Position numbers and translations under genes: made by a program. Positions 1,591 to 51,887 of a stretch of 64,000 nucleotides of DNA are shown here, piece by piece. Source of the stretch: Setoptus koraiensis (Eukaryota; Animalia; Arthropoda); contig CM106586.1 of the NCBI GenBank assembly GCA_048013815.1, forward strand, positions 22,072,001-22,136,000. The letters run 5' to 3'. How positions within the stretch are numbered: the stretch's first letter is position 1; each line of letters opens with the position of its first letter. The notes beneath the pieces are model-generated. The model had not been told where the DNA came from. It saw only the letters and a list, made by a program, of their open reading frames with translations, and did no database searches.

Positions 1591-2050
1591 GTTGACACTC
1601 ACACGATACATAATCTAATTTTTTGTTTGTTGTTCTTTCCAACTATGTACATGTCAAGTGAAAATAAGGGTGAAATCTATCAATCAATTTGGGTTTCGTC
1701 AGCACAAGCATTATAAACAATAACCACAGACAAGTAGAAAGCACCATCTTCTTTGTGACCATTTGTTCTGAGCGGGCAACCTAGATAGTTGAACCCTGTA
1801 GACGGCTCATCTCAGAAAATCCACGAGAATCCTAACAATGTATCATGGAAATAGATAGAAGTATCGATTCTTTCTATCAGATCATCCACCTAGATAAGAT
1901 TTCTTGAAATCAGTCTACCCGGGTTGTACAAAGTAGAGCACTATATTCTTTTTGCATTAGAGCACCAATTCTTCAAGAATAGATTGAGCATCACCTAGCA
2001 TCCCCTAGTTGAAATTTGAAATCTCAACAGTTTTGTGGCTATACTCTTTT

Positions 2051-2190
2051 TTAATTGAAATAAAGAAATGGACTAGAAAGTTCATAAATCGTCTATCACA
2101 ATCCTGTTCTGAAACTTCCCATTGAAAAAACTACAAACGACATCTATGTTGGAACTCTTCTTTCTTCACGGATGAGTCCATATCTTCTAA
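2051..2190 (-). pseudogene. Degenerate relic of the MTG1 3' end and 3' UTR
   Basis: ttaattgaaataaagaaatggactagaaagttcataaatcgtctatca...ggaactc aligns with 3846-4000 (MTG1 stop region), with a deletion and substitutions. Confidence 0.8.
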
Positions 2191-2661
2191 CTAGTGGCTA
2201 TATACCTTCCGATGGGTGGTGGTGCGAATTTGGGCGGTAGGAGATCAGGAGGGTGAGCAGTTGTGGAACAGCACAGAACACTACAGAATTAAAATTTCAA
2301 GCGAGTTTCCACCGAAACACTAGTGGTCGCTAGCTGTTGGTTGCATCCGACAGAGCGCAACAATTGTGCGTTTTATGCTTTCGCCTTCGGTTGTCCTAGG
2401 TAAGAAATTGAACAGGTATGAAATCCGCCCCTTGGAAAATGCACTGTGTATGCTAGCGAGGTTCGATCCATCACGTGGTCGAGTGAGACATCGATTCTTG
2501 TGTACTTAGACAGATTCAGAATCATCATCCTAGAGACACATTCAAACCGCTCACGCACATAATCGTCGGCTTGGTATTATTACCTCGAAGGAAAGAACAT
2601 TCCCAAAGATATTAACTCAACAACAACCCTAGCAACAGCAGAAACCATTGTAATACACAAC

Positions 2662-3805
2662 ATGGCTCGCACCATTTTCTCAACCACTCTCCAAGATTGC
2701 CATGATCTTAATGAAAGGGAAAAATTGTTCAAAAGTAAGGTTAAACAATGCTATAACGGCGGTCCTATAGAAGACGTCAGAATAAAGGCCTTAATGGAGC
2801 TGGTGGACGTAGTTTCATCTCGACCGGAGTTGATATTCTGTTACGAGTGCGTTTACGAGGAAATGCGTAAAATTGTAAGTCAAAATGAACAAGTTATACC
2901 GCTCAAACATGAGTGAAATCCGCTAACGATCAATCTCTCTCTTCAAACTAATATTTCAGTTCGAAGTCAATGTATCCAGAAAATTGCCACCGTCATCCAA
3001 CCAGAATGGGCCAAAATTCGACCCTGAAGAGGACAAGCCATCAAAATTTCGTTCTCTTACATGTACTATGCACCTCATCTATGATCTAATGTATAAGTTT
3101 TTAAACTCTCCTGAGCTCAAGCCAAACTTAGCAAAAGCATGTATCGACGCCAGATTTGTATTGCAATTGTTTAGACTTCTCAATAGCGAAGATTCGGAAG
3201 AGAGGGATCACGTCAAATCAGCATTAATTACAATATATGAACAATTCGGTGGTTTGAGATCTTATATTAGGCGCCAAATAAATAACATATTTTACAGATT
3301 CATCTACGAAACTGAAAACCATAATGGAATAGCGGAACTTCTTGAACTTCTAGAAAGGTAAGTGTCAAAAAAAAAACTACATCTTCTTTGTTTTTTGTAG
3401 TCATTATAACTTTCATCAACATATCCACTTTTCCTCAACTAGTATAATCGATGGGTTTGCTTCGCCACTTGAGGCGGAACACAAAGTATTTCTCCTCAAA
3501 GTCTTGATGCCCCTCCATAAAACTCGATCCTTAAATGTTTATCACTCCGAGTTGACTGCATGCGTTGAGGAATTTTTGGAAAAAGATGAAAGTCTGACAA
3601 AACCGGTAAGTCATTTATTCTACAATAGTGATCATGTGTGCTGTCCAACTAACAAAACTTGAAATTATTAAAGCTAATCCAATGTTTTGCAACAAATTTG
3701 TATTCTTAGGTCATCAGGAGTATGCTAAAATATTGGCCGAAAGTGCACAAAAAGAACGAGGAAGTGTTTCTCGAGTCATTAAAGACTTTTATGAACCGTT
3801 TATGA
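2662..3805 (+). CDS. Truncated, diverged PP2A B56 (B') regulatory subunit paralogue, about 289 aa; join(2662..2874,2960..3357,3443..3605,3710..3805)
   Basis: Three GT-AG introns at the same positions and phases as the full B56 gene; the spliced frame is open to TGA 3803-3805; 5' UTR about 2535-2668 is homologous to about 5319-5452. Could be a recent pseudogene. Confidence 0.7.
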
Positions 3806-3876
3806 ATCTTCTATTGATTTTCAAAGTTTTAAATTTTGAAATAATTTAATTGAAATAAAAAAATGGACTAGAGAGT

Positions 3877-4827
3877 TCACAAATCGTCTATCATAACTTT
3901 GCCGAACAATCCTCTTCTGAAACATCTCATAATAAGACTACAAACGGCATCTATATCTGGAACTCTTTTTTCTTCTCCAGTGAACCTATCTCTGACCAAC
4001 TGAATTTTTTTCAACGAGATAGCTGTATTAATTATCAGATCGTCGAAATTTGTCATGGGCGATTCTAGTTCGAGAACCTGCACATAATTGTACATCCTTC
4101 GATTGTTAAGCCAGTCGATGGTATATTTGGCGATGTCAAAAATTTCGACTGCTTTATCGGATATTGTAGAGCACATGGCTAGTTTCATCGCTTTGTCATA
4201 TGATTTGGTTACACCGGGTTCTAAAACGCCCGGTGTGTCGAAAACATATATAGGAGGTCTGGAGCAGATTTTTATCTTTTGCATAACATGTTTTGTCACT
4301 CCAGCATTTGGACCAACCTGAGCAGGTTCTCCACTTCTCCCCAGATGAAGCTGTCTGAGCCTATTGATGAGAGAAGATTTTCCTACATTTGGTATGCCCA
4401 CTATCATGGTGTTAAATTCCATCCTGTCCTCCCGATTATGTCTGTCAGACTTTCTGATTGTGTCTACTATAAGCTGACCTAACTTGTCATAGCCTCTCTG
4501 AGCGTGATCGAAAGATTTCCCCGTCAGAGTAGTCCTCAGAATATGTGCATCACCGTTATCCGCCAATTTCGCTTCTATTTGGTCCCACTTGGATAAATCA
4601 GCTAAGTCGCACTTGTTTAGTATGAGAATATGAGGTTTGATAGTGCCAAGGTATGTCTTGAGTTGAGTGTTTCGACCAGTCAGAGGAAGGCGTGCATCAT
4701 GAATTTCAATAACACAATCGACATGACTTAGTTTGCCCATCATGGCCTTCATGCCGCTGAACATGTGTCCCGGGTACCAATTAATGGCTTTGCCGATCTT
4801 GGCAGCATTATTGCTCACAGTGGACAT
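3877..4827 (-). CDS. MTG1: Mitochondrial ribosome-associated GTPase 1 (RbgA/YlqF family), single exon
   Basis: NWYPGHM, EIHDARLPLTGRN, NKCDL, GIPNVGKSS (G1), DTPG (G3) in circularly permuted GTPase order; first ATG at 4827. Confidence 0.95.
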   Translation of the reverse strand: MSTVSNNAAKIGKAINWYPGHMFSGMKAMMGKLSHVDCVIEIHDARLPLTGRNTQLKTYLGTIKPHILILNKCDLADLSKWDQIEAKLADNGDAHILRTTLTGKSFDHAQRGYDKLGQLIVDTIRKSDRHNREDRMEFNTMIVGIPNVGKSSLINRLRQLHLGRSGEPAQVGPNAGVTKHVMQKIKICSRPPIYVFDTPGVLEPGVTKSYDKAMKLAMCSTISDKAVEIFDIAKYTIDWLNNRRMYNYVQVLELESPMTNFDDLIINTAISLKKIQLVRDRFTGEEKRVPDIDAVCSLIMRCFRRGLFGKVMIDDL

Positions 4828-5445
4828 GCCTGATAAATTGGTCCTATCTGGTGTTAGATGATGAGACAATTAAGATTTGCAAACTTTTGCTTGATGGTAT
4901 CGCTGACATAACTATCAAATGTTATTTGTAACTAAAGACGTGGACTGGCTAAATAAAAACACGGTTTTATTGCATTGTTTACTATTTCGATCGTATCCAC
5001 TGGCGCCACCTGTTTAACATCTGATGTATTATTGGTCGATAATGTTGGAAAACGCCGTTAGACGCATACCATTACATTAATGTTGCTCTGATGGCACAAA
5101 ATACACGAAAATAAATAAATAAAAAAAGAATTAGAACGTATTTGTGAAAAGTGACTAAATCTTATCCTAGTTGTGCATTAAAACTAAATGCCTACACAAA
5201 TTCTTAGCGTTTTTGCTGCCAAGCTAGAATCTATTATTATGATAATTATTATTACTATTATGAGATCATTATCAGAATCTTTATTATTATTATCAGCAGC
5301 ATCACCATCGTCGTAAAGACGTATTCAAACCGCACACGCATATAATCTTTATCTTGGTATTATTTCCTCGAAGGAAAGAACATTCTCAAAGGTATTAACT
5401 CAACAACAACCATAATAACAACAGAAACCATTAACAACACACAAC

Positions 5446-8277
5446 ATGGCTCAAAACAATTCTGATACCGAGCCATTGACTGTGGGACGCGCCACGACGG
5501 AACAAGTGTCCAGAATTAACACTGGCCTGACAATTAGTGACAGTAGTAATATTATGAATGATCATTCATCAAATCCATCGCCATCTACAAATTTCAGTAA
5601 CATAAACACTGCGAATCTCAACAATACTAACAAGCAAAACAGTAAAATGAATAACACTGGTAGTATTAGTAACAATAATCATATCAATAGTAACAATAAT
5701 AACAATAATGATATTGGTAATGTTGATAGCAGCCCCAATAGCAATAGTGGTAGCAATGATAGTGATAAAGAACAATCATCATTTGACTCGGATCTAAGCA
5801 AAATTATCGCAGGTGTCGATCTTTGTGAGGGATCCGGGGGAGCAGGGAGCTCCATTATTAGTAGTAGTAGTACCATGAATGACCAAAAGGCCACTGCTAC
5901 CAATAACTACAACAACAATATTACTAACACCTCAATTAATAGCAGCATCGTACCTAAAAACAACAATAGTGATATCAATGAAACCATTAGCACCAACAGT
6001 AGCAATAATAATAACAGTAATAAAAAAAATGATGATGTAGATGACGGAAACATCGACTCGGAGATGTTATCATCGTCAATGTTAATTAATGATGATTTTA
6101 ATTTTGATATTCTAACTAGCCACTCTACAATAACTAACGCGGACCATAATCTAGATTTCGTCAAACGGAGTGACACCATACAAAGCAATAACGAGGACGT
6201 TGATTCTAACAATGACACCAGCTCTACAAACACCTCATCGCTTTACCATTACGATTTGGCTGCACACATTCGCTCCGAAGGTGGCTTCGTCAGCTTCGAA
6301 CACCAAGATGGACAACCTACATCGAGGCTGGCCTCGACTTCCTTAGATGACAACAAATTTGAGGCCGATTCAGACAGACTGAAACAGGATGATTTCAACA
6401 ATTCTAAGACATCTTATCACACTGAAATGACCAATCAATCTGATGAAGACATCTTATCAGCTTTTAACAATGTGGATGCTATTGAAAAGTCTACGAGAAT
6501 ATCACGTAAACTTAATGAAACATTTTCCATAAGCCAAGAAGAGGCCACTAGCGACTATTCCCTTGGTCCAGGTTCCAGTGTTGGATCTACTACCGAGGAG
6601 GCAAAATTGTTTGCCACATTACCAACCCTCAAAGATTGTTATGATCTTGATGAAAGGGAAAAATTGTTCAAAAGTAAGGTAGAACAATGCTGTTGCATGT
6701 TCGATTTCGCCGTAAATCCTCTGAGTGAGTTAGATCATAAAGAAACCAAGGCCAACGCTTTAGCGGAGTTATCTGAGGTGATAACGTATCAACCGGAGTT
6801 GATATTCTGCTACGAGTGCGTTTACGAGGAAATGCGTAAAATTGTAAGTCAAAATGAACAAGTTATACCGCTCAAACATGAGTGAAATTCGCTAATAATC
6901 AATCTCTCTCTTCAAACTAATATTTCAGTTCGAAATCAATGTATTCAGGACATTGCCACCGTCATCCAACCAGAATGTGCCCGAATTCGACCCTGAAGAG
7001 GACGAGCCGCCTCTAGAACCATCTTGGCCGCATCTGCAACTTGTCTATGATCTAATGCTTCACTTTTTAGACTCACCCGAGTTCAAGCCAAACCTAGCAA
7101 AAACATATATCGACTCCAGATTTGTATTGCAACTGTTGGAACTTTTCGATAGCGAAGATCCGAGAGAGAGGGACTGCCTCAAAACCATATTACATAGAAT
7201 ATATGGACAATTCTTGGGTTTGAGATCTTATATTAGGCGCCAAATAAATAACATATTTTACAGATTTATTTACGAAACTGAATACCATAATGGAATAGCG
7301 GAATTTCTTGAACTTCTAGGAAGGTAAGTGCCAAAAAAAAAACTACATCTTCTTTGTTTTTTGTAGTCATAATAACTTTCATCAACATATCTACTTTTCC
7401 TCAATTAGTATAATCAATGGATTTGCTTTGCCACTCAAGGAGGAACACAAAGTATTTCTCCTCAAAGTCTTGATGCCTCTCCATAAAACTCGATCTTTAA
7501 GTGTTTATCACCCCCAGTTAGCTTATTGCGTTGTGCAATTTTTGGAAAAAGATCAAAGTCTGACAAAACCGGTAAGTCATTCATTCTGCAATAACGATCA
7601 TTTGTGCTATCTAACTCACAAAACTTGAAATCACGAAAGCTAATCTAATGTTTTGTAACAAATTTGTATTCTTAGGTCATCATGAGTATGCTCAAATATT
7701 GGCCGAAAGTGCATAGCACAAAAGAAGTTATGTTCCTCAATGAATTGGAGGAAATTCTCGATGTGATAGAGCCAAGTGAATTCCAGAGAGTTATGGTCGT
7801 GTTATTCAGGCAACTCTCTAAATGTATCTTGTCCCAACAATTTCAAGTCGCAGAAAGAGTTCTTTATTATTGGAATAATGAATATATACTCAGTCTTATT
7901 AGTGACAATGTGTCAACTATCCTACCAATTACATTTCCGGCCCTTCACGTAAATCCAACATCTCATTGGAATAAAACCATCCACGGTCTCACTTATAATG
8001 CTTTAAAGTTATTCACTGGTATGAATCAAAAACTTTTCCATGAGGTTGTGCAAAAATACAAAGAGGACAAACAAAGGTACTGTTGTGTCATCATATTCTA
8101 TTTATTTATTTTAAACAATGACCGTCATATTAACCATGCTCTTTTATTTTTTCTTTCGTCAACATACATAATTAATTGAGTAGAGAAATCGAGGCTCAAA
8201 AAGAAAAAGAGGACAGATGGAAAAAGATAGAAAAATTAGCCATCAGCAATTCTTCCAATATCCAATTCAACCAGTGA
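5446..8277 (+). CDS. PPP2R5: PP2A 56 kDa regulatory subunit (B56/B') with long Asn/Ser-rich N-terminus; join(5446..6843,6929..7323,7409..7571,7676..8076,8184..8277)
   Basis: [78 protein letters not shown]; four GT-AG introns keep the frame. Confidence 0.95.
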
Positions 8278-9914
8278 TGTATGCAGTAGTCAATTTAGAG
8301 CTAAATGCAGCTCACAGCCGTTAATGATATCTCTGCTCTATTTCCCCACCTTTTCAGTTGTATATGATATAAAAATCTAGCAAGTTGTAAAAGTATGTTA
8401 TGTTTATTTTTAAAAATTTTTAACTTCGCCAATAATGAACTCAGCATTACACCAAGAGTATTTGTAAAATTTTATGCTGACAATTATGTGATCCGACTAA
8501 AAGTTGTCAAACGACCACTGTCTATCTAAATTTGTCGCTCTTCACCCTCTATTGAACATCAATCATTGTAAATCAAGGCCACTATAATGATAAATTTACT
8601 TGGTATAATGGACTTCCTCTACGAGATGAACTTTTATATAGATAAACTTTGATTTTTACGGTGAATACTGATTGAGAAAAGAGCATCCATCAATGTCATA
8701 GCCAATCTCTTTCATGGGCTATTTTAGAAGGATCAATAACAGAGGCGCTCCCTCTCTTTCGTGTTGTTCCATCCGGGAGTCGAACATACATTGGCCCAAT
8801 CGATCTTATCTGTCCTTTATCGGTTAGGTGCAACAATGACCATGCTCGGAAGCAAGAGTGAAATCTAGTGCCACGAGAACCTAACTTTCGGTTAGCCGTG
8901 TTAGTGGTATCGAAGAAAAGTTTTCTATAATAGATAGCAAGTTCGATAAATTTTCAATTAATTTCGCAAGACAATTTCGTGTGCTGACTCGAGTTGAGAT
9001 ACAAACACACAAAAGGAATGGTGCGCTAGACTGCTTGAGATCAAAGCTTGAAGTTCTTTTTATATTATCTTGAGATCAATTACTGGATTCTCATTCATTT
9101 CAAAAAAAAAAAAACGTGCATGATAAACGATCGAACACCCATGACATCAGCGCACATTTATTGCAATTTTCTCGCTCCTATATTTTCCATAAATTGGTGC
9201 ACTCAACATGATTGCTTCCGAACATCAGAGGACGCACTAATTTCATGACCATTCCGGATGATATATCAGAAAGACGGGAAAGACCGGAAAATGGTTACCC
9301 TTCTAAGATTCATCTCGCCGATACCTACAAGGATAGCCCTGTTAGAAAAAAAAACATGCGAGAGTTTAAGTCACCTGGGCTACTTTGTCAGTAGTTATTC
9401 AGACAGGTGAAATAATTTTTTTTTATTTTCGTTGATAGTTGATTTTTTAGCTGTGAGCAGAGTGCCGCAGCGCATCCGCATATGTAAAAATGTAGCCAGC
9501 AGCCAGCCTAGCCTTATTTGCTCGAAATATCATGTATTGGCTGCCGCCTTCATGTCTCTACCGGTGTGTGTGTTAATTAGAAGAAAAACGAGAGACAACT
9601 TCACGTACTTGAGCACTAATGAGTCAGCTATAGTAGTGCGTTATTTAGCTAACTAAAGCACCTGTGTGAATGATAAAGTGGTTTTTGTTTAAAGTCATCA
9701 TGTGCATGTTTTTTTATTTGATATTGTCTGCTACGGTTCAAAGAAGAAAACAACTCCTAACTAGTCGGTAACGCTATTCTATTGATAGAGCGCAGCAGCA
9801 CTAATACTGTATTAGTGAGCTTACCAGATGTTAAAGTGTCTAGGTAGTGTATTTGTTGTTGCATTTCTCTTTAGCAGGAACAAAAGAAACTGAATCATCA
9901 CCACCGACAGCACT

Positions 9915-45540: not shown

Positions 45541-47172
<1,632 letters not shown>

Positions 47173-50255: not shown

Positions 50256-51887
<1,632 letters not shown>

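Follow-up and report, generated by a model that had tools for sequence, protein, structure and literature searches.

The 64,000-nt stretch of DNA analyzed here (the window) comes from an eriophyoid-type mite and carries a lineage-specific partial tandem duplicate of a PP2A B56 (PPP2R5-type) gene. This copy has been released from B56-type constraint: its omega has risen from about 0.02 to about 1.2 to 2.1, values that are not distinguishable from 1. It is not a demonstrated case of a positively selected switch in specificity. The reading that we favor, tentatively and with somewhat less than half of our confidence, is that the frame of the copy is or was selectively kept open, in a young, fast-evolving paralog with no canonical B56 activity.

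The copy consists of the following parts, with residues numbered as in human B56-gamma.

2662..3805, + strand: B56 copy, from the ATG at 2662 through four exons to 3805; spliced ORF of 289 codons plus stop
2662..2874, + strand: exon 1, 71 codons, with the parental ATG kept
2960..3357, + strand: exon 2, covering Pfam B56 profile positions 73-204 and carrying H187I, R188T, and L194G
3443..3605, + strand: exon 3, covering Pfam B56 positions 207-259 and carrying L237S and K240E
3606..3709, + strand: intron 3, differing from the parent at 13/104 sites (12.5%), a background-level divergence
3710..3805, + strand: truncated exon 4, in which parental homology stops at about 3775-3785; stop codon at 3803-3805
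3854..3859, + strand: AATAAA, a match by sequence only, 49 nt past the stop codon of the copy and within the MTG1 3′ repeat

These exons give the open spliced frame of 289 codons that the original prediction described, and the three introns that it saw retained are all present, each bounded by GT..AG and located as in the parent. The three lesions it listed were also recovered. The in-frame loss of about 1.15 kb of Asn-rich N terminus is a net loss of 1155 nt, composed of a 1160-nt deletion and a 5-nt insertion; an in-frame deletion further on in exon 1 removes a net 30 nt; and exon 4 is truncated early, where homology stops. Exon 1 is 1185 nt shorter than that of the parent, and 385 Asn-rich codons of the parental N terminus are missing from it.

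Membership in the Pfam B56 family (PF01603; profile length, 413) is clear for exon 2 (132.5 bits, E = 2.6e-38), and exon 3 also matches the profile (62.4 bits, E = 5.1e-17). Copy and parent proteins are 71% identical across residues 8-272. Homology ends 22 codons into exon 4 and the product ends inside repeat 6, near human B56-gamma residue 306, while the parent runs on for 155 further conserved residues past the point where the homology of the copy stops; instead of the full set of about eight pseudo-HEAT repeats, the copy has approximately HEAT repeats 1 to 6 only (the human B56-gamma core spans residues 30-380; repeat boundaries are from PMC4705670). Set beside canonical PP2A B56/B′ proteins (PPP2R5A-E), the copy is clearly homologous in exons 2 and 3 but differs in its reduced repeat number, in the replacement of five pocket residues, and in an omega of about 1 to 2. 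It differs from its own parent in lacking the Asn-rich N terminus and in that the omega of the parent is 0.02.

The parent lies 2.8 kb downstream of the copy, with one gene between them.

5446..8277, + strand: parent B56 gene, five exons, 816 amino acids, omega about 0.02, with a core near human B56-gamma
5306..5445, + strand: parent 5′ flank, 16% diverged between species versus 34 to 40% for introns 1-3
3877..4869, − strand: MTG1 (mitochondrial ribosome-associated GTPase 1), between copy and parent, with a Pfam MMR_HSR1 match

Parent exon 2 aligns to human B56-gamma without gaps (E = 2e-67), and this fixes the numbering, residue i of exon 2 being human residue i+98. Aligned in this way, the H187 and K240 positions that had been given for human B56-gamma are correct (PMC4930772). 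Named homologs of the MTG1 protein include those of the eriophyoid mites Fragariocoptes setiger (55% identity) and Aceria tosichella (52%). The region holding copy and parent was found in several independent DNA data sets and is therefore not an assembly artifact.

As outgroup we used two Logan contigs, L001 and L002, from one related species (sample SRR33593474). L001 carries the ortholog of the parent B56 gene, with 81% nucleotide identity across 3.3 kb. L002 carries MTG1 and gamma-SNAP in convergent orientation, separated by an empty 475-nt spacer. Compared with L002, the window contains 1658 extra nucleotides (2187-3844), with the terminal 148 nt of the MTG1 region present on either side.

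2040..2186, − strand: direct repeat A1 (left), 148 nt, a dead MTG1 3′ remnant matching 3845-3993 and L002
3845..3993, − strand: direct repeat A2 (right), 148 nt, the 3′ end of the intact MTG1
2187..2522, no strand: filler of 336 nt, in the place expected for the MTG1 body and intergenic DNA of the upstream unit
2523..2661, + strand: duplicated B56 5′ flank and 5′ UTR, 15.1% diverged from 5306-5445

A1 is colinear with the ancestral gamma-SNAP/MTG1 spacer and has accumulated 18 lineage-specific changes plus indels of 13, 1, and 1 nt. BLAST shows colinear homology of 2523-3785 with 5306-7750 and of 2040-2186 with 3845-3993, and the pieces follow one another in the same order upstream and downstream (MTG1 3′ end, B56 5′ flank, B56 exons 1-4). 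The filler matched nothing in the window, L001, or L002. Introns, colinear flanking DNA, and a junction repeat, the marks of a tandem segmental duplicate made at the DNA level, are all present; a processed pseudogene or retrocopy is ruled out by the retention of all three introns.

The simplest history would be a head-to-tail tandem duplication of about 3.9 kb, reaching from just beyond the MTG1 stop through MTG1 and the intergenic DNA into B56 exon 4, followed by internal deletions. The upstream unit would have lost its MTG1 body and intergenic DNA, with the 336-nt filler in their place, and also the Asn-rich B56 N terminus. A 1.3-kb gene remains, which has kept the parental 5′ flank and start codon along with three introns and encodes HEAT repeats 1 to about 6.

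With hyperdiverged patches (described below) left out, the copy and parent branches each have a dS of about 0.07, compared with 0.42 to 0.47 to the outgroup. The related species has no ortholog of the copy, and its gamma-SNAP-MTG1 spacer holds nothing. A protein search with exon 2 of the copy gave no match above 58% identity, only the parent ortholog of the related species was recovered when the query was the lineage-specific end of parent exon 1, and exact-pattern scans of metagenome contigs for orthologs or alleles of the copy gave no matches.

The original prediction started from exons that are more diverged than introns and took the introns as the neutral baseline. Its counts hold: the introns differ at 20/274 sites (7.3%, as against an estimate of about 7%), and exon 2 differs at 70/395 (17.7%) with 40 amino acid changes, as estimated. 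However, the outliers are introns 1 and 2 rather than the exons. Intron 1 differs from the parent at 3/85 sites (3.5%) and intron 2 at 4/85 (4.7%), and exon 3 differs at 19/163 (11.7%), while neutral DNA in the duplicated unit stands at about 15% (5′ flank, 15.1%; dead MTG1 remnant, 14.8%; intron 3, 12.5%), so that intron divergence fails as a baseline. In a sliding-window comparison of copy and parent, divergence falls into three strata: troughs of about 4%, a background of about 12 to 20%, and patches of 40 to 48%.

2822..2965, + strand: low-divergence tract T1, comprising intron 1 in full, with the end of exon 1 before it and the opening bases of exon 2 after it
3250..3449, + strand: low-divergence tract T2, comprising intron 2 in full, with the last 108 nt of exon 2 before it and the opening bases of exon 3 after it; 1 to 4 differences per 50 nt
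2747..2821, + strand: hyperdiverged patch P1, 22 to 24 differences per 50 nt; copy-branch pS 0.43, pN 0.41
3030..3085, + strand: hyperdiverged patch P2, 20 differences per 50 nt and a net 3-nt insertion; pS 0.27, pN 0.44

The longest identical run, 78 nt at 2842-2919 in T1, spans the border of exon 1 and intron 1 (permutation p = 0.0006; p = 0.0056 without the patches), and introns 1 and 2 combined differ at 7/170 sites, compared with 54/378 for the noncoding DNA outside them (Fisher p = 0.0003). When the parent and L001 are compared, introns 1, 2, and 3 are 36%, 40%, and 34% diverged and the core exons 4 to 11%; at 36 to 40%, introns 1 and 2 are therefore unconstrained. Because the two tracts cross exon-intron borders and the introns within them are free of constraint, T1 and T2 are gene-conversion tracts from the parent. 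Constrained introns, or an RNA gene inside them, were considered and rejected, since the introns are 34 to 40% diverged between species and the window has no Rfam or tRNA matches. The original prediction had named intron-limited conversion as an explanation that would count against it; conversion does lie behind the intron similarity, in tracts that cross exon-intron borders. A CtBP tandem pair in the same window places zero-difference blocks beside blocks with 10 to 17 differences per 50 nt, a conversion mosaic from which it follows that conversion between tandem paralogs is active in this genome.

In the patches, divergence is raised on the copy branch alone and the parent branch is not elevated. 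No template for them, local or from another B56 paralog, was matched in the window, and the patch peptides are unlike any B56. Since pS and pN are both high there on the copy branch, the patches point to complex mutation and not to selection at the protein level. On this reading the contrast between introns and exons is mutational in origin: conversion from the parent brought introns 1 and 2, together with the exon ends before them, down to about 4% divergence in two short tracts, and two hyperdiverged patches inflate exon divergence, synonymous and nonsynonymous alike.

What the locus mainly teaches concerns method. Introns of tandem paralogs cannot safely serve as the neutral baseline, since conversion over short tracts can lower their divergence and give a false appearance of accelerated exon evolution; here the intron-based picture was corrected by comparison with dead DNA in the flanks and with a locus from an outgroup. 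Primate red/green opsins and MHC class I genes are pairs whose introns are homogenized by conversion while their exons stay different. The mite copy resembles them in having introns 1 and 2 closer to the parent than the exons are, with contiguous tracts over exon borders, but it has only two short tracts and its intron 3 is not homogenized. Snake-venom PLA2 genes are the accelerated-exon family, with conserved introns and hypervariable exons. The copy is like them on the surface only, in that intron divergence lies below exon divergence; its synonymous sites and dead flanks are as diverged as its nonsynonymous sites, and its outliers are therefore introns, not exons.

The original prediction counted about 8 synonymous changes in exon 2, an undercount: there are 11 codons with synonymous changes only, in addition to synonymous changes in codons hit more than once. 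Differences in exon 2 divide by codon position as 32/19/19, and dS is 0.14 to 0.23. With synonymous changes undercounted, dS at this level, and pairwise omega at 0.58 to 1.11, the pattern is not the reverse of neutral decay that had been claimed. Pairwise omega between copy and parent is 0.58 to 0.84 by NG86, 0.95 to 1.69 by YN00, and 0.79 to 1.11 by GY94 F3x4 maximum likelihood (ML). The ML value is indistinguishable from 1 but exceeds 0.5, the value expected when the copy is neutral and its partner, the parent, is under full constraint (p = 0.006-0.035).

When changes were polarized with L001, the copy branch received 23 synonymous and 97 nonsynonymous changes and the parent branch 12 and 2; protein columns conserved in B56 hold 27 copy-derived changes versus 2 parent-derived. 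A three-taxon branch model gave a copy omega of 1.17 to 1.92 (likelihood ratio test [LRT] against 1, p = 0.10-0.57) against a background omega of 0.02. In the troughs, pS and pN are both low. The 170 codons that remain without troughs and patches carry 10 synonymous and 60 nonsynonymous changes on the copy branch (binomial p = 0.016), and in these background exons copy omega is 2.14 (LRT p = 0.062), in a subset picked after seeing the data. Their nonsynonymous rate, 60/379, resembles the 33/280 of dead flanking DNA on the same branch (p = 0.17). The strong purifying selection seen in the parent and its ortholog (omega 0.02) is thus absent from the copy (omega 1.17-2.14). Of the positive selection originally proposed, the point estimates of 1.17 to 2.14 and the near confinement of amino acid change to the copy stand, but no likelihood ratio test is significant; a dN/dS ratio not above 1 on formal test was an outcome named as refuting the proposal, and the ratio is not significantly above 1 (p = 0.06-0.57). 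Point estimates above 1 leave room for real positive selection.

The open frame is the sole evidence that the copy might have a function, yet it is substantial. Among simulated neutral copies, only 0.4 to 1.1% lack a stop at 112 to 139 substitutions. The coding indel events in the copy, three or four in number, all preserve the frame, while none of the flank indels (1, 13, 1, and 1 nt) does so. Six of 13 noncoding indels between species are also multiples of 3, which weakens the argument from frame; with that pattern allowed for, the joint probability of an open frame under neutrality is about 5e-4 to 2e-3. The copy also has an intact start codon and no damaged splice site. Four poly(A)/oligo-dT RNA runs placed no reads anywhere on 2450-8400, on the parent gene as little as on the copy; they do not contain this mite and probably come from its host. 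Because an open, spliceable frame is improbable under drift, we infer that the ORF is or was recently kept open by selection.

The protein itself shows no sign of purifying selection. Against an HMM of 37 other B56 sequences, exon 2 of the copy scores 165 bits, compared with 158 +/- 12 (p = 0.30) for neutral simulations that start from the parent and carry equally many substitutions; masking the patch gives 198 and 194 +/- 10, respectively. Replacements in the copy are slightly more conservative than random (BLOSUM, p = 0.04-0.17) and not clearly clustered (p = 0.12 and 0.05). Residual fold constraint was considered on these grounds and set aside, as the HMM, BLOSUM, and clustering tests yield at most weak signals. 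In the 5′ flank, the copy has changed 15 times and the parent 6, a rate 2.5 times faster.

All of this would also be expected of a plain decaying pseudogene, functionless since birth, whose frame is open by chance and of which conversion overwrote about 340 nt, and we regard this explanation as possible but doubtful. It accounts for a copy-branch omega no different from 1, a nonsynonymous rate like that of the dead flank, an exon 2 profile decaying exactly as in neutral simulations, pocket residues lost at the background rate (see below), and a 5′ flank evolving at the rate of dead DNA; in addition, one third of the B56 domain is absent from the copy, and the upstream duplication unit is already 2.5 kb smaller. 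Partial-duplicate pseudogenes that exchange sequence with their parents are well represented by CYP21A1P/CYP21A2 and GBAP1/GBA, and the copy shares with CYP21A1P and GBAP1 a tandem, partial location near the parent, conversion tracts, and relaxed constraint; it differs from them in that its frame and all splice sites are intact. A pseudogene that is open by luck fits everything but the open frame, and there it has to accept a chance of only about 1% of escaping a stop codon, coding indels that are all in frame (including a 1160-nt deletion offset by a 5-nt insertion), a joint probability of roughly 5e-4 to 2e-3, and a start codon and every splice site left intact. These points are why we place a frame kept open by selection ahead of chance survival.

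What the product of the copy could do is limited by the state of its pocket for LxxIxE motifs. The changes that the original prediction quoted from the groove motifs are real in the translation of the copy. The pocket is no longer intact: H187, R188, L194, R197, R201, L237, P238, K240, and H243 read I, T, G, R, R, S, P, E, and H, respectively, so that R197, R201, P238, and H243 are retained. BubR1 binding is abolished by H187A or R197A and weakened by K240A and H243A (PMC4930772), and binding of integrase needs L194, R197, L237, and P238 (PMC4705670). Five changes among nine residues are not above the 30% background (p = 0.10), and the proposed rewiring of the substrate pocket gives way to loss; since H187A alone abolishes BubR1 binding, loss of docking is a simpler reading than new specificity. 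Read directly from its translation, the product would have lost canonical LxxIxE docking, and new specificity is not indicated.

Outside the pocket, K202 of B56 pairs with scaffold residue D177 (PMC9974998), and the equivalent contact is kept in the copy, but within conversion tract T2. With H187, R188, L194, L237, K240, and the C-terminal repeats missing, the predicted product cannot be a canonical B56 subunit. In holoenzyme structures, the last HEAT repeats contact the catalytic subunit. If it competes for the PP2A scaffold, the product would do so only weakly.

The proposal of a positively selected mini-B56, its groove rewired to a new specificity or to a dominant-negative or decoy role, is in our view unlikely. 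Omega point estimates of 1.2 to 2.1, the 60 nonsynonymous and 10 synonymous changes of the background exons (binomial p = 0.016, LRT p = 0.06), a pairwise omega above the neutral-copy expectation of 0.5 (p = 0.006-0.035), the frame that is still open, and the retained K202-equivalent scaffold contact (PMC9974998) all agree with it. However, omega = 1 is never rejected unless regions are picked after seeing the data, dN is inflated by multinucleotide patches, and in the segments that changed most, synonymous sites are as diverged as nonsynonymous ones. Replacements fall on conserved positions at random, the groove is not enriched for them (p = 0.10), and alanine mutants of residues lost here, H187A and K240A, abolish or weaken binding (PMC4930772), the direction of loss. 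Comparably improbable is a putative translated young gene under diversifying selection, whose HEAT repeats 1 to 6 would form a scaffold-docking modulator or dominant negative with no hold on LxxIxE motifs or the catalytic subunit. Were it true, selection would resist conversion in the diverged parts of the exons, and an extremely streamlined mite genome would have a lineage-specific PP2A-B56 modulator.

A truncated B56-gamma isoform has reportedly been found to promote cell motility (Ito et al. 2000, EMBO J 19:562); it is said to be an N-terminally truncated transcript variant of the normal gene. The copy resembles that isoform, which was proposed to interfere with normal PP2A-B56 function, in being a shortened B56, but the copy is a separate, diverged gene with a C-terminal truncation.

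Very improbable is an old duplicate under concerted evolution, in which the patches would reveal how old the copy really is, dating it to the species split or earlier, homogenization in layers would account for everything else, and the copy of the related species would have been lost by recombination between the 148-nt repeats: the three divergence strata (about 4%, about 15%, and 40 to 48%), the 8 changes of its own in the functional MTG1 repeat versus 5 on the outgroup branch, and the activity of conversion in this genome are in its favor, but the flanks outside the gene body, to which conversion need not have extended, stand at about 15% as well, change in the patches is not raised on the parent branch, and a later origin explains the missing copy of the relative more simply.

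Biologically, the copy is a further young partial duplicate, and the mite genome that carries it is very compact. It would matter only if the open frame is both expressed and selected, in which case it would be a natural truncated B56 without an LxxIxE pocket and a probe for assembly of the PP2A holoenzyme. Genome size in eriophyoids is about 32 Mb, and most introns have been lost from these genomes (PMC7738191). The other genes in the window encode adducin, an NRF-domain protein, Timeless, gamma-SNAP, and CtBP, and are mostly single long ORFs.

The genes around the truncated B56 duplicate were compared with two contigs from one related species, L001, which holds the orthologue of the parent B56 gene, and L002, which holds MTG1 and gamma-SNAP. 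The features concerned are as follows.

706-1587: gamma-SNAP, without introns in the window
2187-2522: 336-nt segment bordered by the remnant of the MTG1 3' end on one side and by the B56 5' flank of the duplicate on the other
3803-3805, plus strand: stop codon of the duplicate
3877-3879, minus strand: stop codon of MTG1
45541-47169 and 50256-51869, both minus strand: CtBP tandem paralogues

Gamma-SNAP and MTG1 are convergent in both species, indicating that gene order is conserved except for the insertion that carries the duplicate. Within this insertion, the 336-nt segment had no similarity to any other sequence in the window or the related-species loci compared. The stop codons of the duplicate and MTG1 face each other across a gap of only 71 nt; if the duplicate is transcribed, the 3' ends of the two genes must therefore overlap in antisense. 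Close to the duplication junction, positions 3819-3841 form an AT-rich palindrome.

We compared the functional MTG1 3' end (3845-3993) with its remnant (2040-2186) and with L002. Over 143 nt, the functional copy has accumulated 8 lineage-specific changes and the outgroup branch 5, the former number being greater than expected from B56 synonymous rates. Constraint on the C terminus and 3' untranslated region of MTG1 may have been relaxed or altered after the adjacent insertion, which would account for this excess; alternatively, the excess could be noise.

Four RNA runs (X16, X19, X20, and X21) contained zero reads matching the 6 kb searched, which includes a housekeeping gene. These runs share the species label "organism C" with three DNA runs that contain the duplicate/parent locus; the label probably denotes the host, a plant, rather than the mite.

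The parent B56 gene encodes an Asn-rich N-terminal extension of 385 codons. Between parent exon 1 (5446-6600) and L001 (198-1369), this extension is 17% diverged and has changed through numerous indels that keep the reading frame, with gap lengths divisible by 3 in 10 of 12 cases. Judged from this alignment, the extension is coding sequence retained between species.

The two CtBP paralogues are 91% identical overall. When differences are counted per 50 nt, long stretches with 0 differences alternate with stretches of 10 to 17, a pattern that is clearly a gene-conversion mosaic.
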